From Hemiscyllium ocellatum (taxonomy: Eukaryota): a stretch of 64,000 nucleotides of DNA. The stretch lies in assembly GCF_020745735.1 (NCBI RefSeq), contig NC_083415.1:28386964-28450963 (forward strand). Reading direction: 5' to 3'. Below, in pieces: positions 8,908 through 61,664 of this stretch (position 1 is its first letter; every line of letters begins with the position of its first letter). Position numbers and translations under genes: made by a program. A model generated the notes under the pieces. It worked only from the letters and a program-made list of their open reading frames with translations. It searched no databases and was not told where the DNA came from.

Positions 8908-9613
8908 AGAACATAGAACATATAGACGAATACAGAGTAGAACAAGCCTTTCAGCCCTCGATGTTGCGCTGACCTGTGAACTATTCTCATCTCGTCCTCC
9001 TACTGTATCCCATCATCATCCATGTGCTTATCTAAGGATTGTTTAAATCTCCCTAATGTGGCTGAGTTAACTACATTGGCAGGCAGGGCATTCCATGCCC
9101 TTAGCATTCTCTGAGTAAAGAACCTGCCTCTGACATCTGTCTTAAATCTATCACCCCTCAATTTGTAGTTATGCCCCTCATACAAGCTGATGTCATCATC
9201 CCAGGAAAAGGACTTTCACTGTCTACCCTAACTAATCCTCTGATCATCTTAGCTTTCTACTTTCCAATGAGAACAGACCCAAGTCTCTCAGCCTTTCCTT
9301 ATAAGACCTTTCCTCCAAACCAGGCAACATCCTGGTAAATCTCCTCTGCACCTTTTCCAATGCTTCCACATCCTCTCTGTAATGGGGCAACCAGAACTGT
9401 ACACAATATTACAAGTATGGCTGCAGTGGTGTTTTGTACAATTGCAGCATGACATTACAGCTCTGGAACTCAGTCCCTTTACCAATAAAACCTAATATAC
9501 TGTATGCCTTCTTAACAGCACTATCAACTTTCAGGGATCTATGTGCATGGACTCCAAGATTCCTCTGCACATCCACACTACCAAAAGCTTTCGACTGACC
9601 CAGTACTCTGCCT

Positions 9614-9814
9614 AGGTAAAAACAATGACTGGAGATACTGGAAACCAGATTCTGGATTAGTAGTGCTGGAAGAGCACAGCAGTTCAGGCAGCATCTGAGG
9701 AGCAGTAAAATCGACGTTTCGGGCAAAAGCTTTATTCCTGATGAAGGGCTTTTGACCGAAATGTCGATTTTACTGCTCCTCGGATGCTGCCTGAATTGCT
9801 GTGCTCTTCCAGCA
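9614..9814. mobile_element. Fold-back PLE-terminus mini-element (family A) with hammerhead motif, inserted into CR1
   Basis: Arms 9663-9730 and 9748-9815 are reverse complements (64/68); direct repeat CCAGTACTCTGCCT at 9600-9613 and 9815-9828; CTGATGA-A-GGGC-tttt-GACC-GAAA-TGT-C at 9738-9765. Confidence 0.9.
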
Positions 9815-11960
9815 CCAGTACTCTGCCTTCCTGTTATTCTTCCCAAAGTGAATCAGCTCGAATCTAGCTGCATTGAACTCCATTTGACACCTCTCAGCTC
9901 AATTCTGCAGTTTATCCAAGTCCTTCTGCAACCTGCAACATTCTTCCACACTGACCACTATTCCACCGACCTTAATGTCATCTGCAAACTTACTAACTCA
10001 TCCACCTATGCCTGCGTCTAAGTCATCTATAAAAATGACAAACAACAGTAGTCCCAAAACAGATCCTTGTGGCACACCACTAGTAACCGGACTCCAGGTT
10101 AACTCGCTGCCTTCTTACAGAAAGCCAGTTTCTAATCCAAACTGCTAAATCACCCTCAATCCCATACCTCTGCATTTTTTCCAAGTCCATGTACACCACG
10201 TCAACTGCCCTACCCTCGTCCATGTGCTTGGTCACCCTCTCAAAAACCCAATGATGTTTGTGAGACATGACCTGTCCTTGACAAAACCATGTTGACTATC
10301 TGCAATTAAATTGTTGCTTGCTAGATAATTAGAAATCCTATCTCTTAGAATCCTTTCCAAATCTTTTCCTACAACAGACGTAAGGTTCACTGGTCTATAA
10401 TTACCTGGGTCATCTCTACTGCCCTTCTTGAACAAGGGCACAACATTTGCAATCCTCCAGTCCTCTAGTACTAAACCTGCAGACAATGATGACTCAAATA
10501 TCAAAGCCAAAGGCTCCACCATCTCATCCCTAACCTCCCAGAGTATCCTTGGATAAATCCCATCCAGCCCAGGGGACTTTTCTACTTTCACTCTTTCTAG
10601 AATTGATAATACCTCTTCCTTACTAACCTCGATCCTTTCTAGTCTAATATCTCATATCTCATTCTTCTCCTCTACTATGTTCTCCTTTCTCCGAGTGAAA
10701 ACCAATGAGAAATAATTGTTTAGCATCTCTTTGATCTCTACAGGGTCCACACACAACTTCCCACTTTCTGTCTTTGGCTGGAACTATTCCTACCCTGGTC
10801 ATCCTTTTATTCCTCACATACTTATAGAAAGCTTTAGGGTTCTCCTTTATTCTACCTGCTAAAGACTGATCATGTCCTCTCTTTGCTCTTCTTAACTTTG
10901 TCTTTAAAATCTTCCTAGCTGATCTGTAACTCTCCATCGCCTCATCTGAACCATCTCGCCTCATTGTCATGTAAGCCTCCTTCTTCCACTTAACAAGAGA
11001 TGCAATTTCTGTAGTAAACCATGGTTCCCTTACCTTATCACTTCCTCCCTGCCTGACAGGGACATAACTATAAAGGACACGCAATATCTGTTCCTTAAAC
11101 CAGCTTCACATTTGAATGTCCCCGTTCCCTGCATTTTGCTATCCCATTCTGTGCCCTCTACGTCTTGCCTAATCGCATTATAATTGCCTTTGCCCCATTG
11201 ACAACTCTAACCCTGTGGCATGTACCTATCTCTAAACTGAACGTAACTGAATTATGGTCACTCTCTCCAAAGTGCTCACCAAAAACTAAATCAAACACCT
11301 GGCCTGGTTCGTTACCAAGCACCAGATCCAGTGTGGCCTCCCTCTTGTCAGCCCTTCGACATACTGTGTCAGGAAACCCTCCTGCACACATTGGACAAAA
11401 ACTGATCCATCCGACATCCTAAAGTTATAGCATTTCCAATCAATGTTGGGGAAGTTAAAGTCCCCCATAATGACCACCCTGTTCCTTTCACTCCTACCCA
11501 GAATCATTTTGCCAATCCTCTTCTCCACCACCCTGGAACTCTGTGGAGACCTATAAAAAACTCCCAGGAGTGTGACCCCTCCTCTCCTATTTCTAACCTC
11601 AGCTCATACTACTTCAGTAGATGAGTCCCCGTCAAAAGTTCTTTCAGCCACCGTTATACTATCCTTGACTAACAAGGCCACACCTCCCCCTTTTTAATGC
11701 CTTGCCTATTCTAAATGAAAGATCTAAACCCTGGAACTTGCAACATCCATTGCTGACCCTGCTCTATCCATGTCTCCGAAATGGCCACAACAACGAAGTC
11801 ACAGCTACCTATCCATGCTGCAACTCATCTACCTTATTTCGGATACTTATGGCATTGAAGTAGACACACTTCAAGTCAACTTGCTGTCTGCCAGAACATT
11901 CCTGTGACTGTGAAATCTTGTCCATGCCCTCCCTACTCTCATCCTCCTGTGCACTGGAAC

Positions 11961-12898
11961 AAAGAACAAAGAAAATTTACAGCCCAGGAACAGGCCCTTC
12001 AGCCCTCCAAGCCTGAGCTGATCCAAATCTACTTTCTAAACCTGTTGATCAATTCCTAAGCATCTGTATCCCTCTGCTCCCCACCTACTCATGCATCTGT
12101 CCACACGTTATTGACACGCACTATCCTCTGTGTAAAGCACTTGCCGCATATATCCTCCTTAAACTTTTCACCTCTCACCTTGAAAGCGTGACCTCTCGTT
12201 ATTGAATCCTTCACCCTGGGAAAAAGCCTATCTCTATCTACCCTGTCTATACCCTCCTCTGTTCATTGCTTGCACCTTCCATACCAGGCAACATCCTTGT
12301 AAACCTTCTGTCCACCCTCTCCAGAGCATCCACATCCTTTTGGTAATGTGGCGACCAGAACTGTACACAGTATTCTAAATGCAGCCGAACCAATGTCTGA
12401 TACAATTTTAACATAACCTGCCAGCTCATATTCTCAATACCCTGTCCGATGAATGCAGGCATACCATATGCCTTCTTGACCACTTTATCCACCTGTGCAG
12501 CTACATTCAGGGTACAATGGACCTCACTCCCAGATCTCTCTACTCATCAACTTTTCCCAAGACTCTTCCTTTCATTGTATAATTCACTCTAGAATTAGCC
12601 TTGCTCAAATTCATCACCACACATTTCTCTGGATTAAACTCCATCTGCCACTTTTCTGCCCAACTCTTCAGTCTATCTAAAATCTCCTGTATTCTTTGAC
12701 AGTCCCTTATGCTTTCTGCTACTCCACCAATCTTCATGTCATCTGCAAACTTGCTGATCATACCAACAGTGCACTTTTCCAGATCATTTATATACATTGC
12801 AAACAACAGTGGCCCCAGCACTGATCCCTGTGGAACACCACTGGTCACCTTTCTCCATTTTGAGAAACTCCCTTCAACTACTGCTCTCCATCTCCTGT
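11961..12898 (-). mobile_element. 5'-truncated CR1 LINE nested in the larger CR1
   Basis: ORF 12540..12953 [25 protein letters not shown]; (TTTGTTC)n tail; 6-bp duplication TGGAAC at 11955-11960 and 12899-12904. Confidence 0.9.
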
Positions 12899-14132: not shown

Positions 14133-14248
14133 TGAGGGATATGGGCCAAATGTTGGTGGATGAGACTAGATTAATTTGTAATATCTGGTTGGCATGAACA
14201 ACTTAGGCTGAAGGGTTTATTTCTCTGCTGTAGATCTCTATGACTTTA
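14133..14248 (+). mobile_element. CR1 3' UTR, continuation of 8250-8907
   Basis: gagggatatgggccaaatg...ctctatgact resumes the consensus where 8907 stops (compare 63640-63762). Confidence 0.85.
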
Positions 14249-14259
14249 AGATAGCTGAA

Positions 14260-19949: not shown

Positions 19950-22722
19950 GGACTAATAAATTAAACTGCATTTATTTCAATGCAAGGGGCCTAACAGGGA
20001 AGGCAGTTGAACTCAGGGCATAGTTAGGAACATGGGACTGGGATAGCATAGCAATTCCAGAAACATGGCTCAGGGATGGGCAGGACTGGCAGCTTAATGT
20101 TCCAGGATACAAATGCTACAGGAAGGATAGAAAGGGAGGCAAGAGAGAAGGGGAGTGGCATTTTTGATAAAGAGTAGCATTACAGCTGTACTTAGGGAGG
20201 ATATTCCCAGAAATACATCCAGGGTAGTTATTTAGGCGGAACTGAGAAATAAGAAAGGGATGATCACCTTATTGGGATTGTATTATTGACCCCCTAATAG
20301 TCAGAGGAAAATTGAGAAACAAACTTGTAAGGAGATCTCAGCTATCTGTAAGGATAATAGGGTGGTTATGGTAGGGGATTTTAACTTTCCAAACATAGAC
20401 TGGGACTGCTATAGTATTAAGGGTTTATATAGAGAAGAATTTGTTAAGTGCGTACAAGACAATTTTCTGATTCAGTATGTGGATGTACCTACTAGAGAAG
20501 ATGCAAAACTTGACCTACGCTTGTGAAATAAGGCAGGGCAGGTGACTGAGGTCTCAGTGGGGGAGCACTTTGGGGCTAGCGACCATAATTCTATTAGATT
20601 TAAAATAATGATGGAGAAGGATAGACCAGATCTAAAAGTTGAAGTTCTAAATTGGAGAAAGATCAATTTTGACAATATTATACAAGAACTTTCAAAAGCT
20701 GATTGGGGGCAGATGTTCACACGTAAAGGGATGGCTGGAAAATGGGAAGGCTTCAGAAATACGACAATGAGAACTCAGAGAAAGTATATTCCTGTCAGGG
20801 TAAAAGGAAAGACTGGTAGGTACAGGGATTGCTGGATGACTGAAGAAATTGAGGGTGTGGTTAAGAAAAAGAAGGAAGTATATGGAAGGTACAGATAGGA
20901 TAGATTGACTGAATCCTTAGAAGAGTATAAAGGAAGTAGAAGTATACTTAAGAGGGAAATCAGGAGGGCACAATGGGGACATGAGATAGCTTTGGCAAAT
21001 AGAATTAAGGAGAATCCAAAGGGCTTTTACAAATACATTAAGGACAAAATGGTAACAAGGGAGAGAATAGGGCCTCTCAAAGATCAGCAAGGAGGCCTTT
21101 GTGAGGAGCCACAGAAAATGAGGGAGATCCTAAACAATATTTTGCATCAGTATTTACTGTGGAAAAGGAAATGGAAGATATAGACTGTAGGGAAATAGAT
21201 GGCGAAACCTTGCAAAACATCCATATTACAGAGGAGGAAGTGCTGGATGTCTTGAAATGGGTAAAGGTGGCTAACTCCCCAGGATTTGATCAGGTGTACC
21301 CTAGAACTCTGCGGGAAGCTAGAGAAATGATCGCTAGGCCTCTTGCTGAGATATTTGCATCATCGATAATCACAGGTGAGGTGCTGGAAGACTGGAGGGT
21401 GGCAAATGTGGTACCACTGTTTAAGAAGGGTGGTAAGGATATGCCAGGGAAGTATAGACCAGTGAGCCTGACCTCAGTGATGGGCAAGTTGTTGGAGGGA
21501 ATCCTGAGAGACAGAATGTACATATATTTGGAAAGGCAAGGACTGATTAGGGATAGTCAACATGGCTTTGTTTGAGGGAAATCATGTCTCACAAACTTGA
21601 TTGAGTTTTTTGAAGAAGTAACAAAGATGATTGATGAGGGCAGAATGGCAGATGTGATCTATATGGATTTCAGTAAGGCATTTGACAAGGTTCCCCATGG
21701 GACACTGATTAGCAAGGTTAGATCTCATGGAATACAGGGAAAACTAGCTATTTGGATACAGAACTGGCTCAAAGATAGAAGACAGAGGGTGGTGGTGGTG
21801 GGTTGTTTTTCAGACTGGAGGCCTGTGACCAGTGGAGTGCCACAAGGATCGGTGCTGGGTCCTCTACTTTTTGTCGTTTACATAAATGATTTGGATGCGA
21901 GTATAAGAGGTACAGTTAATAAGTTTGCAGCTGACACCAAAATTGGAGGCATAATGGACAGCGAAGTGGGTTACCTCAGATTACAACAGGATCTGGACCA
22001 GCTGGGCCAATGGGCTGAGAAGTGGCAGATGTAGTTTAATTCAGACAAATGCGCGGTGCTGCATTTTTGGAAAGCAAATCTTAGCAGGACTTATATACTT
22101 AATGGTAAGGTTCTCGGGAGTGTTGCTGAACAAAGAGACCATGGAGTGCAGGTTCATAGCTCTTTGAAAATAGGTTCGCAGGTAGATAGGAAAGTGAAGA
22201 AGGCGTTTGGTATGCTGTCTTTTATTGGTCAGAGTAATGAGTACAGGAGTTTATTGTGCCTGTACAGGACATTGGTTAGGCCACTGTTGGAATATTATGT
22301 GCAACGCTGGTCTCCTTCCTATCAAAAAGATGTTGTGAAACTTGAAAGGGTTCAGAAAAGATTTACAAGGATGTTGCCAGGGTTGGATGATTTGAACTAC
22401 AGGGAGAGGCTGAACCGGCTGGGCCTGTTTTCCCTGGAGTGTCGGAGGCTGAGAGGTGACCTTATAGTGGTTTACAAAATTATGAGGGGCATGAATAGGT
22501 TAAATAGAGACAGTCTTTTCCCTGGGGTCGGGGTGTCCAGACCTAGAGGGCATAGGTTTAGGGTGAGAGGAGAAAGATATAAAAGAGACCTAAGCGGCTA
22601 CTTTTTCACACAGAGGGTAGTACGAATTTGGAATGAACTGCCAGAGGAAGTGGTGGAGGCTGATACAATTGCAACATTTAAGAGGCATTTGGATGGGTAT
22701 ATGAATAGGAAGGATTTGGAGG
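19950..22722 (+). pseudogene. CR1 ORF2 (APE endonuclease plus reverse transcriptase), disrupted
   Basis: [55 protein letters not shown]; catalytic FADD mutated to FAAD; multiple stops and frameshifts. Confidence 0.93.
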
Positions 22723-24212
22723 GTTGGGTGCTGGCAGGTGGGACTAGATTGGGTTGGGATATCTGGTTGGCATGGACAGGTTGGACCGAAGGCTCTGTTT
22801 CCATGCTGTACATCTCTATGACTCTACAAACTGTGCATTGATGAAACTGAATCCCTTTATTATTGACAAAGATGTGAGGCTGGTAATAGACAGCATCAGG
22901 GCAATTCAGTTGACAGCTCTTTGGACTCAGTGCTTGTGAAGTTGAATGCTCACAGATCCTGCCTCACTCTTGACATGGTTAAAAGTTGGTGAAAACAGCC
23001 CTTGCTGATTTCTTGATAGACCAATGGATAGAAATGTCAGTGAAGTCTCTGCTGCAGCCTGCAAGAAACCTATGGTATAAAATTTAAAAGCTACTGTGAT
23101 CTGGATCATTACAGGCAGTCCCTTTTATGTCCTGGTATGCAGCTGTAGCTACAGCAGATACACAACATTGCTCAGTGCTCGCTCTCTTTGTGAAGTAATG
23201 TACCTGAACATCAGAGAATTTCACGTTGGCAGAATGCCCCCAAAGCTATGAGTATGTGCCCCTCTGGGGTACCAGATTCAATAAGCTGTTTCTGCCTATT
23301 TCTTACTGCTCTTCTCCTATTCCAGATCCAAAGTTATCCCCATAAGACAATCTGTGGCTGTAGTATAACTGGCTTTGACAGTAAGCAAGAAGAGATTGAG
23401 ATTTTTAAAAAATCATCTTCTCAGCAGTCAGAGTTCAGTTTTCACAATCAGAAAACAAGGCAAAAAACACTCATGAGTTGACTATCAATCACAAATGACA
23501 AACCAGCAACTAGTCTGAAGATAATGGAAGAATCGTTTTTCTTAATGTTGTGGCGCTGTTCTTCCTTTCCGTTAGCACCATGAGTTGCTGAACAAGCTTA
23601 TTGTCTGAGTAGTCCATACTGAGTCAGACCAATATCAGATGATCCTTGAACAAATATTGGACCATAATTTGAATATATCATTCATTGATTTAAATAATTC
23701 GGCTATGTGTTTTGGACTACAAAGAAACATCTCAGTGTAATAAGGTGAGTGATGTGTGTAATAAAGTTGACTGAATAGCCCATTATTCTGGATACGTAAA
23801 GATTCAATTTTGGGTATGGAATCATCAAGTTTCTAAATCAGTGTGTCTTTTTCTTCTGACCTAATACAATTTAAAATGAACTCTCATAAAATGTACATTT
23901 TTTATGTGACATTGGGAGAACCACTGCTGAATTTATAAGGCAGCTTTTCAACATCTAAATGTTTTAAACAAGTATAAAGGCTGAGGTGTTTGAAACTTTG
24001 ATACTGAGTTTCCTAAATTTGGCAAGTTTAGCAAAAATTTGGGCAAGTAAGTAGACTTACTCAAGGAACGAATGACAACAGTTAATACTGCTTTAAGTTC
24101 CTAATCTGTTAAAAGTGGAATGAAATATTTTTGCCTTATAGTTCCCAGTAGTTCAAAATATCATATTTCTCATCATAAGGTATTAAAACTTTTCATTAAA
24201 TGTTTTTCACAG

Positions 24213-25984: not shown

Positions 25985-26280
25985 ATTCCAACTTGGTACC
26001 ACCCTCTAGACCTGTCCTACCTGTCCACCATCCTTCCCACCTATCTGCTCCACCCTCCGCTCTAACCCATCTCCATCACCCCCCACCTATCTACCTATCA
26101 CCTTCCAAGCTACCTACTCACCCCCAGCGTCACCCCCCTCCCATTGCCTCTCAACCTCCTTGACATCCCTCCTACCAATATTCCTGTTGAAGACATGTGC
26201 CTGAAACATCAATTCTCTTGCTCTTCGGAAGCTGCTTGACCTGCTGTGCTTTCCAGCACCACACGCTTTTTGACTATTCT
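25985..26280 (+). mobile_element. Old PLE 3' end (family A-like) with decayed hammerhead
   Basis: C-rich UTR homologous to 44610-44780, then ttcCTGTTGAagacatgtgcctGAAAcatc..gctgcttgacctgctgtgctttccagcaccacac. Confidence 0.8.
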
Positions 26281-29384: not shown

Positions 29385-29411
29385 CCTCCCCCTCCCCTTA
29401 AGAAAAAATGA

Positions 29412-30751: not shown

Positions 30752-30754
30752 GAC

Positions 30755-31502: not shown

Positions 31503-31952
31503 CCGTGAAGGTCAATAATTTTACTACTTACGTTTTTCTGGTTTGAAGATCAACTATTACTGCTCTGCATGATATTTTAGAATGGCTCTATACTGTACAA
31601 ACTCAACCATTGAATATCAGGATCCAGACTATGAGAGGCTGCATTCTTTCAGCCACAGGTTGTTTGCAACACTTATCTACAATGGTTAGGTTATTAAGAA
31701 AACGGTTCTTATAGTATCAGAACATATCCTGTTGACTTGGCAGGCTTGTGTCCAATGTGATCCTCCACAGTGGCTACCAGGTGTCCCAGCCCAGGTAAAA
31801 GACAACTCATGTCAGCACTATAGCTGTGTTCAATTCTATGGTGAATTACTTTATCCTTACCAGGAACATGAGCTATAATCAAATATTTTTTGAATATTTC
31901 CCATAGCTTTTTCATAGCATCATGATCCTCCTTCGGTCAGGTTAGAACAGGA

Positions 31953-32039
31953 AGAAGGGCTTATGCCTAAAATGTCGATTCTCCTGCTCCTTGGATGCTG
32001 CCTGACCTGCTGCGCTTTTCCAGCAACACATTTTTCAGC
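31953..32039 (+). mobile_element. 87-bp single-arm PLE terminus (family A) starting inside the hammerhead core
   Basis: Homologous to 1000-1084; flanked by TTAGAACAGGA (31942-31952) and TTAGAATAGGA (32040-32050). Confidence 0.85.
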
Positions 32040-34823
32040 TTAGAATAGGATGAGCATTTTTGTTCAGAGATTCCTAAACAGGAGTCATACCCAGGGATGA
32101 GCCTGATGATATATTATTGTCTTCATTCCAGGAAGAAAATCCCATATTATTGCTCTTGATGCAATGCATCAATCTCTCTCTGATCCTTTTTTGAGATAAA
32201 ACTGAGCAGAGTCCTTCCACCAATCGGATGGTGATGGCAGTTCATGTGTCTGATAGTATTCATAAAGAAGCACTACATGTGGCTATTGTAGATGTGATGG
32301 AAATTTCAGTACTTTCAGCTTTACAGATTGTCATGGTGATATTTTAACTGAGAGTGTATTGATTGTTCAAGATTAAGGGGAACTGATAGCATTGCTGTTG
32401 CAGCAAAATTCTTCAGCAATTCTGAAACATGAGAATAATGGTCTACTTTTATATTAGACCCAGGAAAATTCTTTATCTTCATTTAGCGTCCCAGACATAG
32501 GATGGAACATTCAGTCCCCGAATTGACAAGAGGAATGGTGGCAGGTGACCTTAATTGGGTAAGAAACAATACATTAGATTCTCATCGTAGAGATTAACAG
32601 TGATTAGGTTCTCCTGGATGGATTGTGCATTTGTTGCTTTCTCCTTAAATTGATAGGACTTTAAATGAAGCATACAGTTATTTGCACTTTCATTTGTACA
32701 AATAGATTTGATGCATTTAAGCAGCTGCAGGCATGGTCTCTCCATGGCATCTCCAAGCCTAATTGGGACCTGTCAGATAGAGAGCAATTTATAGTTTTAG
32801 CATACAATGCAAACAGAGGGCTTCCCACAGCCTGAAAAGTAAACTTCGGTGCATGTCACTGGACTGCATACAATCACAAAAGCTGTCGACACAAAGAGGT
32901 ATTGTCTAAGTGGCAAGAGGTATTGTCTAAGTGGTGTTGAAGTGGAGCAAGAATATATTGTACAAGGATATTCCCCAGTCAGTCTGGGGTGGGAAGGTGT
33001 CTTCTAGGCACTGAGAGGATGAAGAAGTGTGCTGTAGTCAGTTTGGGTGAGGGGATCAGCTCCAAGCAGTCTGGAGTCAAGAAAGGAATGGATTTCTAAT
33101 CAGTCCAGGAGGAATGAATGTGTTCCAGTCAATCTCGAATGTGGATATTCTCCATTCAGTGTGAGGGCTGGATTCCAGTATGCCTGTGTCTTGTTAACCT
33201 GCTATCAGTCTGGGGTTGGACAGGGTCTGTTCAGGGCATCGCCCATACTGAGGGTATCGGATATTTGACATGTATTAGGGTGGATGAGCATGGCTGGTGA
33301 AGCAGAGGGAATCAGCATGGGGAGGTGCAGTTGTATGTTGTGGTCAGTGATCTGGAGGTTCAAGGTGGGGAGCATATTGTCGCACAGAGGAGGGTCATTA
33401 AAGGCTATAGTGCAAGTATCTTGGGTCAAATGCTCAGCAGGGCTAGTGGGACCTAAATGGTGAAGGACTTAGGGAAAGATTGGTGACCTCAATGGTGGCA
33501 ATGATTGCCAGATCAGTCAGGAGAGGAGAATAAAGAGGCTCCTCTTAGTAGTATCTCAGAATGCATTTATTCTTCCTTGTGTTAAAATCTGCACAAAATC
33601 TCAACAGCAATATATTAGATAATTGTGTATTCAAGATGATACTTCAGTGCCGTATTGAGAGAATGATGGTTCCATGCTTTGCATGGAACTTTGAAGTTTC
33701 AGCTGATTTGGTGGAGCTAACATACTTAGCACCATCTTTCAAGGATAGAGAGTTATTCATATTCTATTTCCATTTTCTTCCTTCACTCAACACTGTAAAA
33801 ACTAAAATCATTTATCACGTTTGTATTTGCACTCTTTTTAATTGCATGGCATATTATTCACTGGCACTTTAAATATGCTTAATTATTTGTGAATAATTTG
33901 CTTTGAGAATGTAATAAGATGATATATATTTTTTTTTCTTCCATTACTTGCTTGGCAATGTATTGGATCTCACCAATGTTGGCCACTTACAACAATGCTC
34001 AATCCAGTTGCTTGCTGGTATATGAATATTATATAATTAAACTCTTTAAAATATTATGTTTATCAATCTATAAAGTTGTCAAAGCCTTGAATTGATCCAT
34101 TAGAACTTTTACTGAAGTGTTGCTGAATGAATTACCAAACTAAAGATATTGATTTTCTGAAATAGGTAGTAGATGCTACCTGTATTGATTGATCAGTTCA
34201 GTGCTTGAAATCGACCTACATTTTAAAACTGTCTTTTTATTGTACTCTTAAATTTGTCATAGCATGAATATCCCTCGGAAATATGAGTAATAGGTTGTGA
34301 TCCTGCAAATCCAGGGAAATGGGTGGTTGCTTATATACTGCTAGTGTTTGAGTAGTCAATCTGAATATTTCTCTCAAGAAAAAAACTGGCAAAGGTTAGC
34401 ACAGAAGCTCATGCTATCAGTTTAAAAGATTTCCATCCAATAAAAAATGTAGTTTGAAGTACAGGTGCTTAGATTACGATTTGGTTCTTTTTATTAATTT
34501 TGTAGCAGGGCAGAATACGTTCAAAACATTTCATTCAAGGTGTATAATGGTTATTTATGTTTCAACATAAAATCTGTTATTTGATGGTTTTGATAATCTT
34601 TGATATTCTTCAGACTGAAATCTACCCTTGCACTACCTGAAAATATCTACCTCAACCTTCTGAGAGGATTCAGCATCTTTTTGAAGCTCCTAATCCAAGG
34701 GTCAACAACTTATGCTTAATTGAAGAGACTTTTAAAAAGAATTGTCTAAAATAGAAGTAGTTTAGTTTTGCATGCTGAAAATGCAGCATTTATAAACCAA
34801 ATAGTTAGCAGTTTACCAAGTGT

Positions 34824-34905
34824 CAAGAGTGTAGTGATGGGAAAGCACAGCAGGTCAGGCAGCATCGGAGGAGCAGGCAGCATCCAACGTTTGGGGCATA
34901 AGCCC
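34824..34905 (-). mobile_element. Single-arm PLE terminus (family A)
   Basis: Reverse complement of the family A terminus; flanked by TTTACCAAGTGT (34812-34823) and TTTAACAAGTGT (34906-34917). Confidence 0.82.
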
Positions 34906-35239
34906 TTTAACAAGTGTGTTTGGTAGAATGCATAATTTGCATGTATTTTATTTATGCATCAGTGAAAGAAATGAAAACTAAAGTAGACCCAACTCTGAAT
35001 TATCATGCTTTTGGCTTTTTTGATGTTATTTTGTTGGAAACAGAGTTAGGGATGTTTCAGTCCAAGATAGTGACAGAGTAGGGCTGTTGTGCAGGAGTTT
35101 GTCTTCTACGTTTGCTTTTCTTTATCTTTTTCTTTTTCTCCCTCCTACTCATTTTTCTTTTACTTACTTGCATTGTCCTGAGCTTGGACTACATCGGCAG
35201 TGGCCAGAGTCCAACATGTGGAGCTCCAGCAGACCCAGG

Positions 35240-36553
35240 ACTCGAGCCGGACCCAGGGCTTGTGCCTCAAGCTGGGCCCAGGGTGTGCACCTCGAGAATG
35301 CCCAGAGTGTGTATCTTAGGCCGGGCCCAGAGTGTCTACTTTGAGCAGGGCCTGGTGTATGTAACTCAAGCGGGGCCCAGGGTGTGTACCTCAAGCTGGG
35401 CCCAGGGTGTGTACTTCAAGCTGGGCCCAGGATGTGTATCTTGAGCCGGGCCGAGGGTGTGTAACTAGAGTGGGGCCCAGGGTGTGTTCTTTGAGCTGGG
35501 CCCAGGGTGTGTACCTTGAGCCGGGCCCAGGGTGCATATCTCAAACCAGACCCAGGGTGTGTACCTTGAGCCAGACCCAGGGTGCGTATCTCAAACCAGG
35601 CCCGGGGTGTGTACCTTGAGCAGGGCGAGGATGTGTACCTCGAACTGGACCCAAGGTGTGTACTTCGAGCTGGACCCAGGGTGTGTACTTCGAGCCGGAC
35701 CCAGGGTGTGTACCTCGAGCTAGGCCCAGGGTGTGTACCTCGAGCCAGGACCAAGATGTGTACCTCGAGCCAGGACCAGGATGTGTACCTCAAGCTGGGC
35801 CCAGGGTGTGTACTACGAGCTCGGCCCAGGATGTGTATCTTGATCCGGGCCCAGGGTGTGTAACTAGTGTGGGGCCCAGGGTGTGTTCTTTGAGCTGGGC
35901 CCAGGGTGTGTACCTTGAGCCGGGCTCAGGGTGCATATCTCAAACCAGACCCAGGGTGTATACCTCGAGCTGGACCCTGGGTGCGTATCTCAAACCAGGC
36001 CCGGGGTGTGTACCTCGAGCCAGGACCAGGGTGTGTACCTTGAGCCAGGACCAAGATGTGTACCTCGAGCCAGGACCAGGGTGTGAACCTTGAGTCAGGA
36101 CAAAGATGTGTACCTCGAGCCAGGACCAGGATGTGTACCTCAAGCCGGGACCAGGGTGTGTACTTTGAGCTGGGCCCAGTATGTGTTCCTTGAGCTGGAT
36201 CCAGGGTGCGTACCCTCGAGCTGGGCCCAGTATGTGTTCCTTGAGCTGGACCCAGGGTGCGCAACTCGAGCTGGGGCCCGACGTGTGTACCTTGAGCCAG
36301 GCCCAGGGTGTGTAGCTTCATTAGGGCCCAGGATATGTACCTCGAGCAGGGCCCAGGGTGTGTACCTCGAGCAGGGCCCAGGATGTGTACCTCGAGCAGG
36401 GCTCAGGGTGTGTACCTCGAGTGGGCCTGGGGTGTGTATCTCGAGCCAGGCCCAGGGTGTGTAGCTTGAGCAGGACCCATGGTGTGTACCTCGAGCCGGG
36501 TCAGGGTGTGTGCCTCAAGCTGGCCTGGGGTGTGTATCTCAAGCTGGGCCCAG
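35240..36553. repeat. GC-rich minisatellite, 25-bp unit (some 24 bp), consensus CCAGGGTGTGTACCTCGAGCTGGGC, about 53 copies
   Basis: Period read directly (e.g. GGGTGT at 35380 and 35405). Confidence 0.95.
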
Positions 36554-37679: not shown

Positions 37680-37740
37680 ATGGCAACACCAGTGAGGTGG
37701 GCCCTATGGTGAGAGATGTGACTTTGACTCTGATGAAGGA

Positions 37741-38011
37741 TGGTCACATGATGTGGAGGAGCCGGTATTGGACTGGGGTGGACAAAGTACAGCACCAAAG
37801 TACACACAGCACCAGTTTATTGTCCAAAAGGTTTATTTGGAAGCAATAGCTTTCGGAGCGCCGCTCCTTCATCAGGTAGCTGTGGAACAGGATTATAAAT
37901 CACAGAATTTGTAGCAAAAGATTGTGTTCCACAGTTACCCGATGAAGGAGCAGCGCTGCAAAAGCCAGTGCTTCCAAGTCAACCTGTTAGACGATAACCT
38001 GGTATTTTTTA
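37741..38011. mobile_element. Fold-back PLE-terminus mini-element (family B) with two hammerhead motifs
   Basis: Antisense arm ~37750-37924 and sense arm 37925-38011, homologous to 5588-5718; flanks ACTCTGATGAAGGA (37727-37740) and ACTCTGGTGGAGGA (38012-38025). Confidence 0.85.
37844..37878 (-). ncRNA. Minimal hammerhead ribozyme motif, core intact (stem I mutated)
   Basis: Minus strand tac-CTGATGA-A-GGAGC-ggc-GCTCC-GAAA-GCT-A-ttg. Confidence 0.7.
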
Positions 38012-39055
38012 ACTCTGGTGGAGGAGGCGGTGAAGTGGTGGTGGAGGAGTATCAGCCCAATGTGTCGACAAATGAATGTTTTTCACTGTATTTTATAGTA
38101 TTGTTACTGTAAAATACACTTGATAATAAAATAACAACCAAAAGATATGTTTCTAACAATACTCAACACTTCAAAAACACAGAATTAAGAAAATTTATTT
38201 GACTATTGATTTTTCTAATTGAAAAGCTTCTCATGACTTACTCTGAATGTGCTATCATCTCAGCTGTATCAGAATCAAGAATGGTTGCAACCATAAAACC
38301 TTTTCTGGAACCACAAGCAACATTTACAATCAAAGAGTACTGTCGCTATCCTAACTCAGAAAGGTTTCTGTGAATCACAATAATGTCTTTCAAGAAAGAT
38401 ATCAATTGAAACTATAAAATGGAACTTTTTTTTCTTAAAGACATGGCTTTCTTCATTTTTCTTAAGGCTTTTTCATGTTTATACAGTGTAATTGGGGAAA
38501 ACAAATTGAGAGTTTAGAATTAGATATTAAGGAGTTGCATACAGCTCTAGAGTTGAAGTTTCAGGTACATGTTTGTGGTCGTTTGCTTTTTGCGTGTATT
38601 ATCTGATCTACAAATATATAGAATGCTTCTTATGTTTCATTAATTTAGGTTAAAACTTATCCTTATTTGGCATTCTTATACAAAGCAAGGTACAGTTACA
38701 CATTAACTATAAATTTTCAGTGAAGTGATTTTAGTTGCTCTGTGATGCTATAATTGGTTTGTAAATAATAATCTTAGTTGAAGTGATAATCTGAGAAATT
38801 AGTGCCTATATCAATGAATAGATTTGGTGCAGAGTTTAAATATGTACAAATCTGAATTGGTTTGTAATATTTTTTGACTTCAAGATTAAAAAAAGGAAAA
38901 AGTTAGATGAGCCACAGTACAGCATGTTCCACCAAAGTCAGACTTCACAGTTCAAGCTATGCTGAACTTAACCATACTTTACTTTTCCTTTCTTACTTCC
39001 AATTTAGAGACATTTTCTTGCACATTCCTCCATTGTTCAGTTGCAGTTTTGTTCA

Positions 39056-43000: not shown

Positions 43001-43889
43001 CCCATCTTCACTTTAAAGACATCCTTCATCATGTTGGGCAGCATTATCACTGTGCTAAATGGGACAGACACAAAATTGGGCATCTATGAAGTGTTGTGGG
43101 CAATCAGCAACATCTGAATTCTATTCAACCACAATCTATAACTAATGGTCTGGCATATACCCAACACTACCTTCACCAGCAAGCTGGCAGAATCAGCCCT
43201 GGATCAAAGAAAGGTGCAGGAGCAGCACCAGGTCTAGCTCAAAATGAATTATCAATCCGGTGAGGCTGAACAGGACTAGAGACAGACAGTCATAGAATCA
43301 TACATCATGGAAATAGACCCTTAGGTCCAACTCATCCATGCTGACCATAAACCTAAACTAAACTAGTCTCACTTACCTATGTTTGGCCCATATCCTTCTA
43401 AACCTTTCCTAATGTCTTTTAAATGTTATAACAGTAGCTGTATCTACCACTTCTTCTGGCAGCTTACTCTACATACAAACCATCCCCTGTGTGAAAACAT
43501 TGCCCCTCAGGTACTTTTAAAATCTTTCTCCTCTCACCTAAAGATATGCCCTTAGTTTTGAACTCCCCAGCCCAGGGAAAAGACCTTTGCTATTCACCTG
43601 ACCTATGCCCCACATGATTTTAAAAAGCTCTAAAAGGTCACCGCTCAACCTCCTACGCTCCAGTGGAGAAGGTTCCAGCCTCTCCTTATAACTCAAACCC
43701 TTCATTCCCACAACATCCTGGTAAATCTCTTCTGAACCTTCTCCAGCTTAATAATATCCTTCCTATAACAGGGTGACTGAATTGTACACAGTACTCCAAA
43801 AGTGGCCTTGCCAATGTCTTGTACAACCTCAACATGATATCTCAACTCCTATACAATGTTCTGAGCAATGAAGACAAGTGTACTAAATG

Positions 43890-44067
43890 AATGTGAGGAC
43901 TGCAGATGCTGGAGATCAGAGTCAAGATTGTGATGTTGAAAAAGCACAGCATGTCAGGCAGCACCCAAGGAAGCATCCTAAAGAAGAGCTTATGCCTGAA
44001 ATGTTGATTCTCCTACTCCTCAGATGCTGCCTGATCTGCTGTGCTTTTCCAGCACCACACTGTTGAG
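43890..44067. mobile_element. Fold-back PLE-terminus mini-element (family A)
   Basis: Antisense arm 43890-43971 and sense arm 43976-44062 (cCTAAAGAagagcttatgcctGAAAtgtt); duplication AAGTGTACTAAATG (43876-43889) / AAGTATGCTAAATG (44068-44081). Confidence 0.85.
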
Positions 44068-44097
44068 AAGTATGCTAAATGCCTTCTCAACCCTGTC

Positions 44098-48247: not shown

Positions 48248-50916
48248 ATTGTAATCGAAGAAAGTGTCGTGAAAGTAGGACAGACATTAAAAAGATAACA
48301 GTAATTATAAATTTTATCTCATAATTTTGCAAATAGTGCTTGTAAGTCATTTTAAAAAAATATTCACAAAATAAATTGATTTTGATACACTGCAACACAA
48401 TATTTTCCTTTTGATAGTCTAAATCTCAAAACTGAAGTAACATTGCACAAATTCCATTATACATTTACTATAACTGAACCAGAATCATTCATAATAATTC
48501 TGAAAGCCCAGACCAACAAGGATGATTTCTCGATCATAACTTCAGAGTCCCAAACGTCACATTGCACAAAGCACAACATAACTGACATAATTGATGTGAC
48601 AATCCCTTTTATGCATAAATGATTTGTATCTTCTGTCAAGAGCTTTCTAATAATAAAGAAAAATAGACTTGCCCTTTCAAAAAGGAAATGTGTTAGAAGT
48701 GTAATTCATGTTTTAAATGTGTATTGTTCTATGCTATGAACTGCTCTGTTCAGTCCACTTATGATCAACCTCTTAAAAAGGCATCACACTCAACACAGAA
48801 TTGTAGATTAAGTTGGTCAGCCTGTTAATGGTTGCATTTGTGATTTCTACCACAAGAAACACCTAGATTATTTCCACTTTCCTGTTTTCTTCCAGTATAC
48901 TTTGCCAATTTCATTTTTTAAAAACGACTAATTTCCTTCACAATTACAGGCTGCTTCAATCACAATATGCGGAAGATAATTCCACATTTTCTGTTGATAT
49001 CTTCTCTATCTTAACCTGTTTTAATCTGTTGTGTTTATAGTTAGTGTTTGAGTAAAACAACTGAAGAAAAATATTGAACATTGCCCCTTGGTTATATTGT
49101 ACCCTGTATTGACCAATAGACATTCTTTGTAAAATAAGCAAAATACTGACTGTTGAAAATATGATGAGAAACCAGAAATTGTTAGAAATTTTCAGTATGT
49201 CAGGGAACAACTTGAGGAATACAGCTGATGAGCTGGATATTTGTTCCCCGCCTGACTGATTTGAAGGTGGAGGGGAACTTGTTAAATCTAGTGAACAACC
49301 TGTCCATTCACAGTCATCCATATTCCAAATAAACCAGGAGAAGGACTTGTATTTGTGTGGCCTGGTTGTGGGCCAATTAAGATAAGTAAAAATGAAATTA
49401 ATGCTCACTCAAGGTCCTCATCCCAGCATTACTGATACCAGATGGCCCACACCAAGTGGCTACCATCTTTGAGTCTTTCAGAAGCCCAGTCCCTCCACAC
49501 CACAAAGATTGTTTTCTCCTCCTCTCATCTCTCAAACCCTAAATCTCTACCTCCTTTGCTAAGACCTGTCAGCTTAGAAACTGGTGAGACCTCTAAACTC
49601 TCACTGAAATTCCAAGGATGTAAGGTGGATCAGACAACCTGCCCAATTCAGATGAGAGTCCTTGTTACTGAGCATAATATCAGCTCAATAATGGTCAGTC
49701 TGCAAACATGAAGGGGTGCTTAGTTTACACAATGCATCAGGAATGGTATAATTAAAACACAGTGGTATAGTGGGAGCCATTCCAGGTTTCACTATTAAAG
49801 TAGGTAGACCCATGAAAGGGTGCAGCCCTGAGAAAAGCACATAGCCATTGGCACACAGGTAACCAGATGAACAGAGTTGGTAAAGCACTAGGTCTGTGAA
49901 TGTCAGTATAGTTGGTCATGATCCTTCAGGTATAAGGCAGCATAAATAGGACTGGTGTGTAGCGGGGTCAAGAGTTTATTGTGTGTGAAGCTGAGTGTGA
50001 GCAAGCATATCAAACCAATATGAGAATAAGGTACCCTGAGAAAGGGACCTAGAGTAATTATCCTGAGGAGCAGGTCAGAGCACTAATCATAATGAGAACA
50101 GGATGGTTTTGAATGAAACCAATTGGGCCAACAAATGTAATAAACTAACTGGTCAATAGTGGTCCGTCTTAGCTGGTCACTGGAAGCTGGTCAGTTGGTT
50201 AGTTGAGGACAACTCAACAGACTAACTAGCTCAAATAGTCAACCAGGAATAAATCAACTGGGTTCATTGTGCAATTTCCACCTTTCCTTTTGCATTCATT
50301 CATAAACTGTGGGACTACCTGTAATGTTGCCTTTATTATACATTGTTAAGTGCCCTTGAGAAGGTGGTGCTAAACCACTTTCTGTAATTACTGTAGTCCA
50401 TAGTATAGGTAAGGACATCCATAGCGCTGTTAGAGTTTCCAGGATTTTAACCCTGCAACAATGAAGAAGTGGTGTTATGATCACAAGTTAAAATAGAGTA
50501 TGATTTGAAGGCAAACTAATGATTGGTGGTGCTTTCATGCAAGTGCACCCTTTTTCTTTTAGATGGTGAAGATTGAAGGTATGTCGAAGGAGCTTTGGTA
50601 CATTTCTGCAGTGTTTCCGATAGATTGCACACAGTGTGCTAATGTGCACCAGTGGTGTTGAGAATGAATGTTGATTTTGAGGATGATGTACAAATTAGAT
50701 GACTCAGCTAATGGAGAAGTTTCCCTGATCTCCATTGAATTTAAGTCTACTGGGACTCCTTGATGGTGTACATGGTTGAATGTGAACTTGATGAATAGGG
50801 CATCCATTCCAGTGTCCCCTCTGAAATTTTGATCTTCTGTCCATGCTTGAAACAAGGCTGTGTTTGGACCAAGTGGTTCTAGCAATGCAAAAAAAAGAAC
50901 ATCAGTGCAAATATGA

Positions 50917-51169
50917 AAACATAAATCGCTGAAAAAGCTCAGTAGATCTGACAGTGTTTGTGGGAAGAAATCAGAGTTAATATGTCAGTCCAGTGACTCT
51001 TCCTCAGAACAAACCTTCCTTGGTTCTAAGGAAGTGTCACTGGACCTGAAACGTTAACTCTGATTTCTCCCCACAGATGCTGCCAGATCTGCAGAACTTT
51101 TGTCGTAATTTCTGTTTTTGTATCTGCTTTTGTATCTGATTTCCAACATCTGCAATTCTTTTGGTTTTA
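50917..51169. mobile_element. Fold-back PLE-terminus mini-element (family C) with back-to-back hammerhead motifs
   Basis: Arms ~50917-51010 and 51023-51118 separated by 12 nt; gtt-CTAAGGA-A-GTGTC-actg-GACCT-GAAA-CGT-T-aac; degenerate flanking repeat 50901-50916 / 51170-51185 (12/16). Confidence 0.8.
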
Positions 51170-51186
51170 ATCTGTGTGAAAATGAC

Positions 51187-51209
51187 TGTGTGTGTGTGTG
51201 TGTGTGTGT
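51187..51209. repeat. (TG)11 microsatellite
   Basis: Directly visible. Confidence 0.95.
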
Positions 51210-58084: not shown

Positions 58085-58938
58085 AACGCATACAGACCAA
58101 ATATTAGACTATAGAAACAATCATCTCAACGAAGCTGCATTAGAACATTAGTTCAATGAGCCACCACACACTGCAGCAGAGCAGAAGAAAATCACCTATA
58201 CAGTGTATTCAAAAAGAATGGGTACTGAATGAACGCAGTCTGCCTATTTCTCAGCAACAAACCCAAACAAGCAGACAAAACACATCCAGAAACTCTAGCC
58301 ACTCTCCCCTACATAAAAGACATCTCGGAAATGACTGCCAGACTACTCAGACCTCTTGGCATTATGGTAGTTCATAAACCCACCAAAACACCAAAACAGT
58401 AGCTAATGAACTTGACAGACCCTATACAGACAACAAGCAAAACTAATGTCATTTACAAAATACCGTGCAAGAACTGTAACAAACACTACATTGGACAAAT
58501 AGGCAGAAAATTAGCCACTGGGATACATGAACATCAACTTGCCTCAAGAAGACATGACCCACATGCACTAGTATCTTTAAATACAGAAAAGGAAGGACAC
58601 CATTTTGACTGTAACATCACATCCATCCTAGGCCAAGTCAAACAGAGAGGTGGAGGAGAATTCTTCAAAGCATGGCATTCCAACCAGAACTCTATCAACA
58701 AACACATTGATTTGGATCCCATTTACCACCCCTGAAAAAGAGAACAGTAAATGATGTCACCATAGGAAATGATTTCACCACAGGAAATAACATTGCCAAC
58801 CCAAGGCAACCCAAACATATAAATAAAAAGCAGACTACACCACCAGTGCTTCATTGAAATGCTCACTGGAGATGTTACCTAGTATGGTGACAAAATGTCT
58901 GAAAATGAAGCTTCCAGCTCAGCAAGCAAACCTGCAAC
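58085..58938 (+). mobile_element. 5'-truncated PLE (family D): thumb remnant, GIY-YIG ORF 58406..58735 and terminal repeat with hammerhead at 58863-58902
   Basis: KTNVIYKIPCKNCNKHYIGQIGRKLATGIHEHQ..AWHS..INKHIDLDPIYHP; tca-CTGGAGA-t-GTTACC-tagtat-GGTGAC-aaaa-tgt-c-tga. Confidence 0.9.
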
Positions 58939-58941
58939 AAG

Positions 58942-59308
58942 TGTTTGAGCTTTAGGGAGAGACAGAATAAGCTGGGGCTATTTTTCCTGAAGTGTTGGAA
59001 GATGAGATTCCCCAGGGTGAGGGAGTCCAAAACTAGTGGGCATAGGTTTAAGACCAAAAAGGAAACATATAAAAGGGACCAAAGGGGAAACTTTTTCACG
59101 CAGAGGGTGGTGTGTGTATGGAATGAGTTGCCAGAGGAAGTAGTGGAGGCTGGTACATGTACAATATTTAAAAGGTATCTGAATAGATATGTGAATAGGA
59201 GGATCTGGGCTAATTGCTGGCAAATAGAAATGGATGTATTTAAGATATTTGGTTGGCATGGATGAGCTGGACCGAAGGGTCTGGTTCCATGCTCTCCCTC
59301 TATGACTA
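58942..59308 (+). mobile_element. CR1 3' end
   Basis: GHRFK..GNFFTQRVVCVWNELPEEVVEAG; ctctatgacta tail. Confidence 0.9.
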
Positions 59309-59774
59309 TAAACCAGCCATTCTCAACCAGCCTTAGGGGCCCTGGTATATTTGAAGGGGGCCACAGACTGAAAATTGAGAAGGGGAATGCCAAGTGTTTA
59401 TGGGGACCCTGGTAACTGAACTGATGAAATATCCAAACCTAACCTAACCTGGAGCCTGAGATCATGAAACTTGCAGAAAAGCACCAAGTTCAAGGATCAC
59501 ATTCAATAAGATAGATGTTTAATTTCATAGAGTCTTTTTTTAAAGTTTTGTCCAGTGTGTCAGAATGTTTAAGTTTTCTTGTTGTTCAATAATAAATGAT
59601 TTTCTATCTGTTGGTTTTGTATCCCTGTTTGAAAGGCAGGGGTTGGGGGGGTGGGGGGGTGGAGCTGGAACCTGAGAAGAGCTCCAAAGGGGGCCATGGC
59701 CAAAGGACTATTGAGAATCACTGCTGTAAACAAATCTGAGCAGGTATGTGGGTTGTGAGTTGTAAAATGTCTTC

Positions 59775-60812
59775 AGGAGGCACATGGAATATAATATGAG
59801 AAAGCGTGAGGTTATCCACCCTGGTAGGAAGAACATATGTGCAGCATATTTCTTAAATGGTAACAGGTTAGAGAAGGTAAATATGGAAAGGGACAGGGCT
59901 ATTTTTGTCAATAAGTCACCTGAAAGCAAACAGGACGCAGCAGCCAGCTATTGGGGACGCTATTGGAATTTTAGCTTTTATCACAAGAGGATTTGTGTAC
60001 AGGACTAAAGTTGTCTTGTTTCAGAAAAATAGGTGCTTCAGATATACAGATTAGACCCAACTTGTATGCTGTGTATGGAGTACTGTGTGCAGTTTTGGTC
60101 TCCTTACCTCAGGAAATATACTTTTGACAGAAAGGGACTAGATTTGTTCCCTTCCTATGAAGAGAGATTGAGGAAACCGGATGCATAGTTACTGGAGTTT
60201 TGAAGAATGATGGTGATCTCACTGAAACTGACAAAGGTACAGAGAGTGTAGAACAGAAATTGTTGGAGAAGCTCAGCAGATCTGGCAGCATCTATAGAGA
60301 GAAATCAGAGTTAACGTTTCATGTCGAGTAACCCTTCCTCAGAACAGGAAGAGTCACTTGACACAAAATGTTAACTGATTTCTCTGCAAAGATGCTGCCA
60401 GACATGCTGAGTTTCTCCAACAATTTCTGTTTCTGATTTACAGCATCCACAGTTTTTTCAGTCTTTCGACAGGGTAGATGCAGGTATGATGTTTCTCCAG
60501 TGGAGGAACCTACATCTAGGAGACCAAGTTTAAAACATTGGGAATACTATTCAGGACTGAGATGGCAAGTTTTTTTTTAAATTCAGAGAATGGTAAATCT
60601 TTGGAATTCACTGCGCCAGAGAATTATGGAAGTTCAGTTTTTGAGTATATTTAAATTAACAGTTGATACATTTTTGACTGTTGAGTACATAAAGGATTGT
60701 GGGGATAGTTGGGTAAAGTGTATTGAAGTGTTCAATCTACCATGATCATGTTAAATGGTGGAGCAGGTTTGATGGGCTCAATGGTCTATTCCTATTCTGA
60801 TATTCATATGTT
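59775..60812 (+). mobile_element. Old CR1 3' fragment interrupted by a PLE hairpin
   Basis: tggagtactgtgtgcagttttggtctccttacct; tcagagaatggtaaatctttggaattc; homology to 15530-16458. Confidence 0.8.
60250..60466. mobile_element. Fold-back PLE-terminus mini-element (family C)
   Basis: Arms ~60252-60345 and 60346-60432; minus strand 60345-60310 gtt-CTGAGGA-A-GGGTT-actc-GACAT-GAAA-CGT-T-aac; homologous to 50917-51169. Confidence 0.82.
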
Positions 60813-60867
60813 CTGAAGGAGCAATATTGAATATAGGCATTCCAGAAAGAAACAGGAATTAGAATAA

Positions 60868-61169
60868 GTTTGTGAGAAGATTTGTAGCTCAGGTGCTCAT
60901 TGTTGTGGTTCTGTTCACCGAGCTGGGAGTTTTTCTTGCAAACGTTTCGTCCCCTTTCTAGGTGACATCTTTAGTGCTTGGGAGCCTCCTGTGAAGTGCT
61001 TTTGTGCTGATTCCTCCGGCATTTATACCAGATTCAAACCCGTATAAATGCCGGAGGAATCAGCACAGAAGCGCTTCACAGGAGGCTCCCAAGCACTGAA
61101 GATATCACCTAGAAAGGGGACGAAACGTTTGCAAGAAAAACTCCCAGCTCGGCGAACAGAACCACAACA
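60868..61169. mobile_element. Young fold-back PLE-terminus mini-element (family D-related) with exact 14-bp TSD
   Basis: Arms 60900-61028 and 61042-61170 match at 124/129, 13-nt loop; AGGAATTAGAATAA at 60854-60867 and 61170-61183. Confidence 0.93.
61093..61132 (+). ncRNA. Minimal hammerhead ribozyme motif with intact catalytic core
   Basis: gca-CTGAAGA-t-ATCACC-tagaaa-GGGGAC-GAAA-CGT-T-tgc; stem I GCA/TGC; mirror copy at 60938-60977 (-). Confidence 0.75.
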
Positions 61170-61664
61170 AGGAATTAGAATAATATTTATTTTATTTTTA
61201 AAGTGAATTCCAAGGCACCAGAGATGTGGTAAAATCCTGTGAAAGGAGTGTCCACATGTTGGCTTCTGTTCAACACAAAACAGGAGAATAAAATATATAC
61301 AATAACAACTTAAGAAGGATTTGGGCAAGGAACTTAAAATCAAGAATATAGGTAAAGAGCAGGTAACAGGATGACAGCTGAGGTGGTACTTGATGTAGTT
61401 ACATTGAGCTTTGTTGTCACGTATAGCAATTTGTACAAACTTTATTTTAGTTTTATATCGAAATGAGTTAATTTCATTGTCATGTGAATATCATCACTCT
61501 CCAACCCCCTTTTCACCATCATAGTATCTCACATTTTCTGAATTTCATCCAAAGAGCATTGCCAGAACAATGTTTACATATGTTTTTTACTAATTCTACA
61601 TTAATACTCTTTGCAAACTACAGTCCATGGTAATCCATGAAAACTGAATAATGGAAAATAAGAA

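Follow-up and report, generated by a model that had tools for sequence, protein, structure and literature searches.

The window analysed here is a 64-kb stretch of the Hemiscyllium ocellatum genome that contains six short insertions of 180-300 bp, E1-E6, each built as a fold-back. All six share one geometry: an antisense arm on the left, a sense arm on the right, and the 3' ends of a Penelope-like element (PLE) pointing outward on both sides. We searched the entire window for inverted repeats (arms of at least 30 nt, gap of at most 150 nt) and recovered E1-E6 and no others. This result bears out the six loci listed in an earlier reading of this sequence (hereafter the original prediction), and indicates that the fold-back class was not selected from a background of hairpins. 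The elements, their arms and their target-site duplications (TSDs) are listed below; percentages give the complementarity of the arms.

E1, 9614-9814, minus strand: fold-back, arm 76 nt, 91%. Long arm 9614-9730, antisense on the plus strand, with a 36-nt tail at 9614-9649; short arm 9731-9814, sense on the plus strand. TSD CCAGTACTCTGCCT, an exact 14-mer, at 9600-9613 and 9815-9828.
E2, 37741-38017, minus strand: fold-back, arm 79 nt, 84%. Long arm up to 37920, short arm from 37921. Outer limits in the original prediction 37741-38011, with a 12/14 TSD at 37727/38012; preferred outer limits 37767-38017, with a 13/14 TSD at 37753-37766/38018-38031 and a tail of ~29 nt.
E3, 43890-44067, minus strand: fold-back, arm 50 nt, 80%. 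Long arm 43890-~43973, with a 31-nt tail at 43890-43920; short arm ~43974-44067, its hammerhead decayed. TSD at 43876-43889 and 44068-44081, matching at 12/14.
E4, 50917-51169, plus strand: fold-back, arm 82 nt, 76%. Short arm 50917-51013, antisense, followed by a 6-nt spacer; long arm 51020-51169, with a 35-nt tail at 51135-51169. Candidate decayed TSD, 10/14, at 50901-50914/51170-51183.
E5, 60250-60466, plus strand: fold-back, arm 57 nt, 89%. Short arm 60250-60345, antisense; long arm 60346-60466, with a 35-nt tail at 60432-60466. TSD not recovered.
E6, 60868-61169, minus strand: fold-back, arm 132 nt, 95%, the youngest of the six. Long arm 60868-61028, antisense, with a 33-nt tail at 60868-60900; short arm 61029-61169. 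TSD AGGAATTAGAATAA, an exact 14-mer, at 60854-60867 and 61170-61183.

The arms of each element are unequal. As the original prediction stated, one arm is longer and the other is a shorter inverted copy, and in 6/6 elements the excess lies at the outer end of a single arm. This extra piece, the tail, measures 36, ~29, 31, 35, 35 and 33 nt in E1 to E6, respectively. If each arm chose its start site independently, a one-sided tail in 6/6 would be expected with a probability of at most (1/2)^6 = 1.6%. A conserved 22-nt tail module, TCTGATTTCCAGCATCTGCAGT, is present in E1, E3, E4 and E5; the window contains four copies of it, all on long arms.

We searched for relatives by BLAST of the elements against the window followed by inspection, and aligned arms and single copies family by family: family A (E1 and E3), family B (E4 and E5), family C (E2) and family D (E6). 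The original prediction had described four families of unrelated sequence. Families A and B are in fact related, with a common 19-nt tail motif and mutual BLAST matches in addition to the 22-nt module, which leaves three groups. Solo, non-inverted copies exist for every family. The window holds seven of them, with variable 5' extent:

~960-1085, plus strand: family A, a longer copy with the short-form 3' end, without tail.
5585-5711, plus strand: family C, with the same 3' end as the E2 short arm.
26179-26270, plus strand: family A, preceded by more pseudo-long terminal repeat (pLTR) sequence upstream, short-form 3' end, without tail.
31948-32040, plus strand: family A, 5'-truncated, short-form 3' end, without tail; TSD of ~11-13 nt (TTAGAAYAGGA).
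34819-34907, minus strand: family A, 5'-truncated, short-form 3' end, without tail.
58864-58939, plus strand: family D, an old copy that ends at the E6 short-arm end and has a compensatory pair in helix II relative to E6.
62800-62856, minus strand: family B, a decayed fragment.

Such 5'-truncated single-arm copies indicate a retrotransposed origin. The ends of the short arms coincide with the ends of the solo copies in families A, C and D, the exception being E1, whose short arm ends 13 nt earlier. Across the 64 kb, the hairpin form accounts for about half of the PLE-tail insertions.

Target sites and hammerhead remnants

A 14-bp TSD flanks four of the six elements, exact for E1 and E6 and matching at 12/14 positions for E2 and E3. 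In 3000 random placements, each with a boundary freedom of +-8 nt, a match of at least 12/14 arose in 1.3% and a match of 14/14 in 0.13%. The E4 candidate at 50901/51170 matches at 10/14; since the E4 arms are themselves 76% alike, a TSD of the same age would be expected to look much like it. For two elements the unoccupied target could be examined in paralogous sequence. When the flanks of E3 are joined with one copy of the TSD, the resulting empty site aligns unbroken to three paralogs of a long interspersed nuclear element (LINE) at ~27.7, 63.1 and 22.2 kb. The reconstructed empty site of E1 aligns across its junction to one paralog, 12314-12839, at 64% identity. In these paralogous empty sites the duplicated bases are present in single copy, and because the alignments run straight across, the duplicated bases must be host sequence that was originally present once. 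The original prediction of true TSDs of ~14 bp is upheld by these empty sites and by the excess of exact and 12/14 matches over the random placements.

The host sequence of the E1 and E3 insertions consists of paralogs of the 3' region of a LINE at 21597-22034/22056-22841. The first of these segments, on the plus strand and accompanied by 22056-22841, is a LINE reverse-transcriptase fragment (Pfam RVT_1, E 1.5e-16).

At E2 the outer boundary has two versions. The 12/14 repeat that was originally reported at 37727/38012 is present, but a better rival, GTGGAGGAGSCGGT, matches at 13/14 at 37753/38018. We prefer the rival, and with it the boundary 37767-38017, because the arms are alike as far as 38017 and because it gives a tail of ~29 nt rather than ~55 nt; the data do not settle the choice. 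In the left flank of E2, an 11-mer at 37730-37740, CTGATGAAGGA, is identical to the hammerhead box of the element's own long arm (37865-37875). It falls within the originally reported TSD, and could be a coincidence, a sign of target preference or a leftover fragment of an older PLE.

A strict scan for minimal hammerheads (CUGANGA, helix II of at least 4 bp, GAAA) returned one intact core (0.08 expected from shuffled sequence), which lies at 37851-37875 in the E2 long arm. Remnants of CUGANGA...GAAA are recognisable in all six elements, mutated outside the E2 long arm, and the decayed cores of every family can be aligned; E6 and its solo relative differ by a compensatory pair in helix II. With a single intact core, "hammerhead-bearing" stands for decayed remnants in most arms. 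Minimal hammerheads occur in PLE pLTRs (PMC4209133), and the cores share their traits: one additional nucleotide behind the box and, in the position of helix III, a palindrome (ACGU or AGCU). Families A and C also have a G-C closing pair in helix II. Rfam hammerhead models gave no match, either in the whole window at gathering thresholds or in 60190-61240 in E-value mode, as might be expected for a motif that lacks helix III. Rfam matches to the hairpins were limited to spurious miRNA and snoRNA. Among these, the centre of E6 (60990-61078) scores as mir-975 in E-value mode, with 43 bits for a gathering score of 90; this match is a hairpin artefact and could mislead automatic annotation.

We compared the inner ends of the arms with the hammerhead positions. 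In E1, one arm begins inside helix II and the other ~7 nt upstream of the box; in E3, one begins downstream of the cleavage site and the other ~6 nt upstream of the box. Both E4 arms begin ~7 nt upstream of the box, separated by the 6-nt spacer, and the E5 arms begin 3 nt upstream of the box and inside it. The inner ends lie further out in E2 (~58 and 20 nt upstream of the hammerhead) and in E6 (~97 and 110 nt upstream). The inversion point had been placed at or just upstream of the hammerhead; this is so for E1, E3, E4 and E5, but not for E2 and E6, where it lies 20-110 nt upstream. We also considered whether hammerhead cleavage sets the arm ends, and rejected the idea: no arm starts at the predicted site (after GUC/GUU), and the starts are found either upstream of the box, within helix II or still further downstream.

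On the minus strand of E2 (37741-37872), an ATG within the hammerhead box opens a 42-codon frame that extends through the tail. The frame from the equivalent ATG in E6 soon stops, and we left both frames out as evidence for a pLTR. In an Anolis PLE, the open reading frame (ORF) begins at stem II of the hammerhead (PMC11167929).

Junctions, copy number and age

To examine the E5 and E6 junctions in other copies, we used contigs of four public runs aligned to 60000-61400 at 85% likeness; organism A is the same species, and organisms B and C are relatives. Summed contig depth over the E5 and E6 arms was 1e5-3.5e6, compared to ~36 in unique flank: both families are very abundant in all three organisms. 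Over the centres of the two elements, depth was 6-30 fold lower. In each run, more than 400 contigs match the E5 short arm and then diverge at 60345 into unrelated continuations (agreement 0.37), and high-depth paralog contigs match E6 from 61029, with unaligned letters before that position. In all, thousands of paralogous contigs fit the arms and break off at the E5 and E6 junctions. The contig over the E5 centre has a depth of 37.6, the single-copy level. The inner junctions also differ between related copies within the window, in E1 versus E3 as well as in E4 versus E5. These observations favour junctions that formed at each integration over a hairpin that replicated as a unit. Opposite-strand joints in the contig alignment are artefacts of long-tail copies on a palindrome, and we left them unused.

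The same contigs bear on age. E5 is shared with organism B, in which a single-copy contig covers 60316-60428 with 4 differences. At E6, single-copy contigs from two organism B samples begin their alignment exactly at 61170, the first base after the element, and carry 90 further letters. If the E6 site is empty in organism B, these 90 letters would begin at 60764, abutting the end of the neighbouring organism B contig at 60767. Organism C contigs leave the window at 61195, 12 nt to the right of the E6 TSD, and continue ...CCAACCATTCCCAACCAGCC. This break leads into unrelated sequence and points to a lineage-specific insertion or deletion; it holds no information on the E6 site.

Both arms of E6 have a TATAAA box at their inner end. 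They differ at 5/128 positions (60897-61169), and every difference is a transition: A/G on the sense strand accounts for four, and two fall at CpG sites. The count is too small to separate decay from two different templates or from RNA editing.

Two other kinds of repeat lie in the window. High-copy repeats flank E5 and E6 at 60047-60140 and 60705-60798, with a depth of 1e4-3e5 in organisms A, B and C; they are unrelated to PLE tails. A minisatellite at 35241-36553 has a 25-bp period and ~52 copies of the unit CTCGAGCCGGGCCCAGGGTGTGTAC, with 75% matches; the long ORFs on both of its strands are probably repeat artefacts.

Proposed formation at integration and its alternatives

We propose that each element is one minimal, ORF-less PLE insertion that took its shape at integration, a reading to which we give a probability of about 75%. 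The GIY-YIG endonuclease of a PLE would nick both target strands ~14 bp apart, leaving two 3' overhangs, and each exposed 3' end would act as primer to reverse-transcribe the 3' (pLTR) portion of a PLE RNA. The product would be a pair of antisense cDNAs facing each other, the element 3' ends lying on the outside. One cDNA would start from a distal reverse-transcription site, which would give its arm the tail of 29-36 nt, and the other from a proximal site that equals the end point of the solo copies. Both cDNAs would stop early, in the hammerhead or up to ~110 nt upstream, and would be joined head to head through a template jump or end joining; fill-in of the stagger would then yield the TSD. 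Such double target-primed synthesis predicts an antisense left arm, a sense right arm and outward 3' ends, the geometry that we observed. That these steps produced these particular six loci is inferred from the products. Of the two origins that had been offered for the class, a stereotyped by-product of PLE reverse-transcriptase and GIY-YIG integration is supported by the PLE anatomy and by the locus-specific junctions.

Several observations weigh against this proposal. Pfam detected no PLE reverse transcriptase or GIY-YIG domain in the ten longest ORFs of the window, where the only reverse transcriptase is the RVT_1 LINE fragment at 21597-22034; an autonomous partner therefore has to be assumed. 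The E1 short arm ends 13 nt short of the usual proximal end, at a site where element (CCAGCACT) and target (CCAGTACT) match at 7/8 positions. The reverse-transcription start sites are therefore not strictly two fixed points, and the microhomology suggests that annealing can shift the start. With the purified green-anole PLE protein (PAc), the start site in vitro was alike on both strands (PMC11167929), and this absence of a strand difference neither predicts nor explains a tail that is confined to one arm in 6/6. For E5, the best TSD match in the flanks was 9/14, within the range of the random placements. The uniqueness of the junctions was tested on E5 and E6 only, via assembled contigs, which drop variants, and the probable emptiness of the E6 site in organism B is judged from alignment ends. 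Finally, the centres of E4 and E5 are nearly symmetric, with 6-nt loops, as would also be expected if a single cDNA had snapped back.

In that scheme, a cDNA from one nick would prime itself and copy itself, and the second arm would be joined to the other target end. The centres of E4 and E5 would allow it, and palindromes at inverted PLE junctions have been taken to imply a propensity for self-priming (PMC3846280). A copied arm, however, cannot outrun its template, and in E1, E3, E5 and E6 the tail sits on the supposed copy and is missing from the would-be primary arm, the one with extra inner sequence. The 5/128 differences between the E6 arms, in an element that seems younger than the split from organism B (flank divergence 2.6%), also speak against self-copying, weakly given the small counts. 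We consider snap-back synthesis rather unlikely.

A second possibility is that the hairpins are non-autonomous families, similar to short interspersed nuclear elements (SINEs), retrozymes or miniature inverted-repeat transposable elements (MITEs), that are transcribed and re-inserted whole by PLE machinery. Six elements in 64 kb and a TATAAA box on both E6 arms would suit such families, and breaks in family B copies are frequent immediately upstream of the hammerhead box, which could mark a short unit. But the junctions of related hairpins are unlike, paralog contigs end at the E5 and E6 junctions, where depth over the centres falls 6-30 fold, and the E5-centre contig is at single-copy depth (37.6 vs ~36). 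Every family also has solo, non-inverted copies, no hammerhead unit is tandemly arranged, and unequal arms with a 14-bp TSD do not fit MITEs. We therefore regard whole-unit replication as unlikely, and the independent ribozyme-MITE or retrozyme-like families that the original prediction offered as its other choice are not supported. An origin after insertion, by two PLE tails landing side by side or by local inversion or recombination between neighbouring copies, is very improbable: PLE tails are extremely abundant in the genome and adjacent landings are possible, but in E1, E3 and E6 a single TSD encloses both arms together, with none inside, arm-to-arm identity tracks TSD identity, and head-to-head orientation with a one-sided tail recurs in 6/6.

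Within the proposed integration pathway, the tail on one arm only (6/6) might mean that the two priming events are mechanistically unlike, one strand always using the distal site and the other the proximal site. Some young hairpins with a promoter on both arms, such as E6, might in addition be transcribed into hairpin RNA that is re-mobilised or enters small-RNA pathways. This extension is rather doubtful. If true, the shark genome would preserve a natural archive of PLE integration intermediates on a very large scale, and might also be home to a hairpin-type non-autonomous parasite of PLEs.

PLE integration is the least understood retrotransposition mechanism, with one reconstituted system (PMC11167929). 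Minimal hairpins are compact in vivo products that hold both priming sites, the cDNA stop points and the nick stagger in 200-300 bp, and their number seems to be very high in this genome and in two related ones. Tabulated across the genome, they could serve to test the in vitro model and would yield the stagger length of shark PLEs (~14 bp).

Comparison with known systems

Three other element types share features with the fold-backs. Like MITEs, they are small and non-coding, with inverted repeats and a TSD. Unlike MITEs, they have unequal arms with a one-sided tail, an inverted repeat that spans the whole element, a variable centre and a TSD of 14 bp. We rejected a MITE identity on account of the unequal arms, the 14-bp TSD and the solo truncated relatives. 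LINE-1 elements reportedly undergo 5' inversion by twin priming (Ostertag and Kazazian, 2001). The likeness is that both target strands prime cDNA and that an inverted segment lies within one TSD-flanked insertion; the difference is that twin priming inverts an upstream part of the same RNA, whereas both arms here copy one 3' region. As the arms copy the same region from defined start sites, we rejected an inversion of the LINE-1 type.

Metazoan non-LTR (non-long terminal repeat) retrozymes (PMC7229834; bioRxiv 10.64898/2026.07.22.740005) resemble the fold-backs in being short and non-coding, with a type I hammerhead, and in their kinship to PLE pLTRs and dependence on PLE machinery. Retrozymes, however, are direct tandem repeats that give circular RNAs, and the fold-backs are inverted pairs. 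Tandem Repeats Finder reported no array at any of the six elements, and the hammerhead units are not tandem in the window. A retrozyme identity was rejected, the arms being inverted and the hammerhead units not tandem. The 2026 preprint describes retrozymes in one chondrichthyan and does not mention inverted forms (bioRxiv 10.64898/2026.07.22.740005).

The closest system is the insertion of endonuclease-containing (EN+) PLEs, as seen for Pen2a_Av of Adineta vaga (PMC3846280), in a published scheme (PMC8557442 Fig. 2) and for Poseidon PAc (PMC11167929). In a typical Penelope insertion, an inverted pLTR adjoins a direct copy of pLTR-ORF-pLTR structure, and the pLTR TATA box can be read both ways (PMC3846280). 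In Adineta vaga, a 31-bp tail lies on one inverted pLTR and TSDs are 8-10 bp (PMC3846280). PLE insertions have been described with an inverted 5'-truncated copy and a tail of 30-40 bp, often at a single end (PMC8557442), and inverted pLTRs with short 3' extensions count among the peculiarities of PLE curation (PMC8969392). In vitro, PAc cut and extended both target strands; it started reverse transcription at two adjacent internal sites, the tail being the sequence between them, and hammerhead cleavage was unnecessary for insertion (PMC11167929). This insertion architecture is thus known in rotifers, flies, fish and lizards (PMC3846280, PMC8557442, PMC8969392, PMC11167929), and the novelty implied for the shark elements was overstated. 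Our literature search turned up no description of these shark families, or of the minimal hairpin without an ORF as an abundant class.

The sequence-level marks of EN+ PLE membership are all represented in the set: hammerhead, common 3' end (families A, C and D), inverted copy, one-end tail and TSD (E1, E2, E3 and E6, with a candidate in E4 and none in E5). The likeness extends to the head-to-head arrangement of inverted 5'-truncated copies, to an extension of 29-36 nt on a single end and to a short TSD, as well as to a minimal hammerhead in the repeat, a pLTR TATA box (E6) and solo 5'-truncated copies with a common 3' end. On the other side, both copies here are truncated inside the pLTR, with no ORF between them, so that the whole insertion measures 180-300 bp; the TSD is ~14 bp, unlike the 8-10 bp of A. 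vaga PLEs; and the families are shark-specific and very abundant. The regular features have all been published, and the difference from published PLE insertions is one of degree of truncation only. The appropriate annotation label is PLE fragments, not MITEs, miRNA-like hairpins or new ribozyme elements: E1-E6 are the known PLE insertion signature in its shortest, ORF-less form, ordinary for this class of element.

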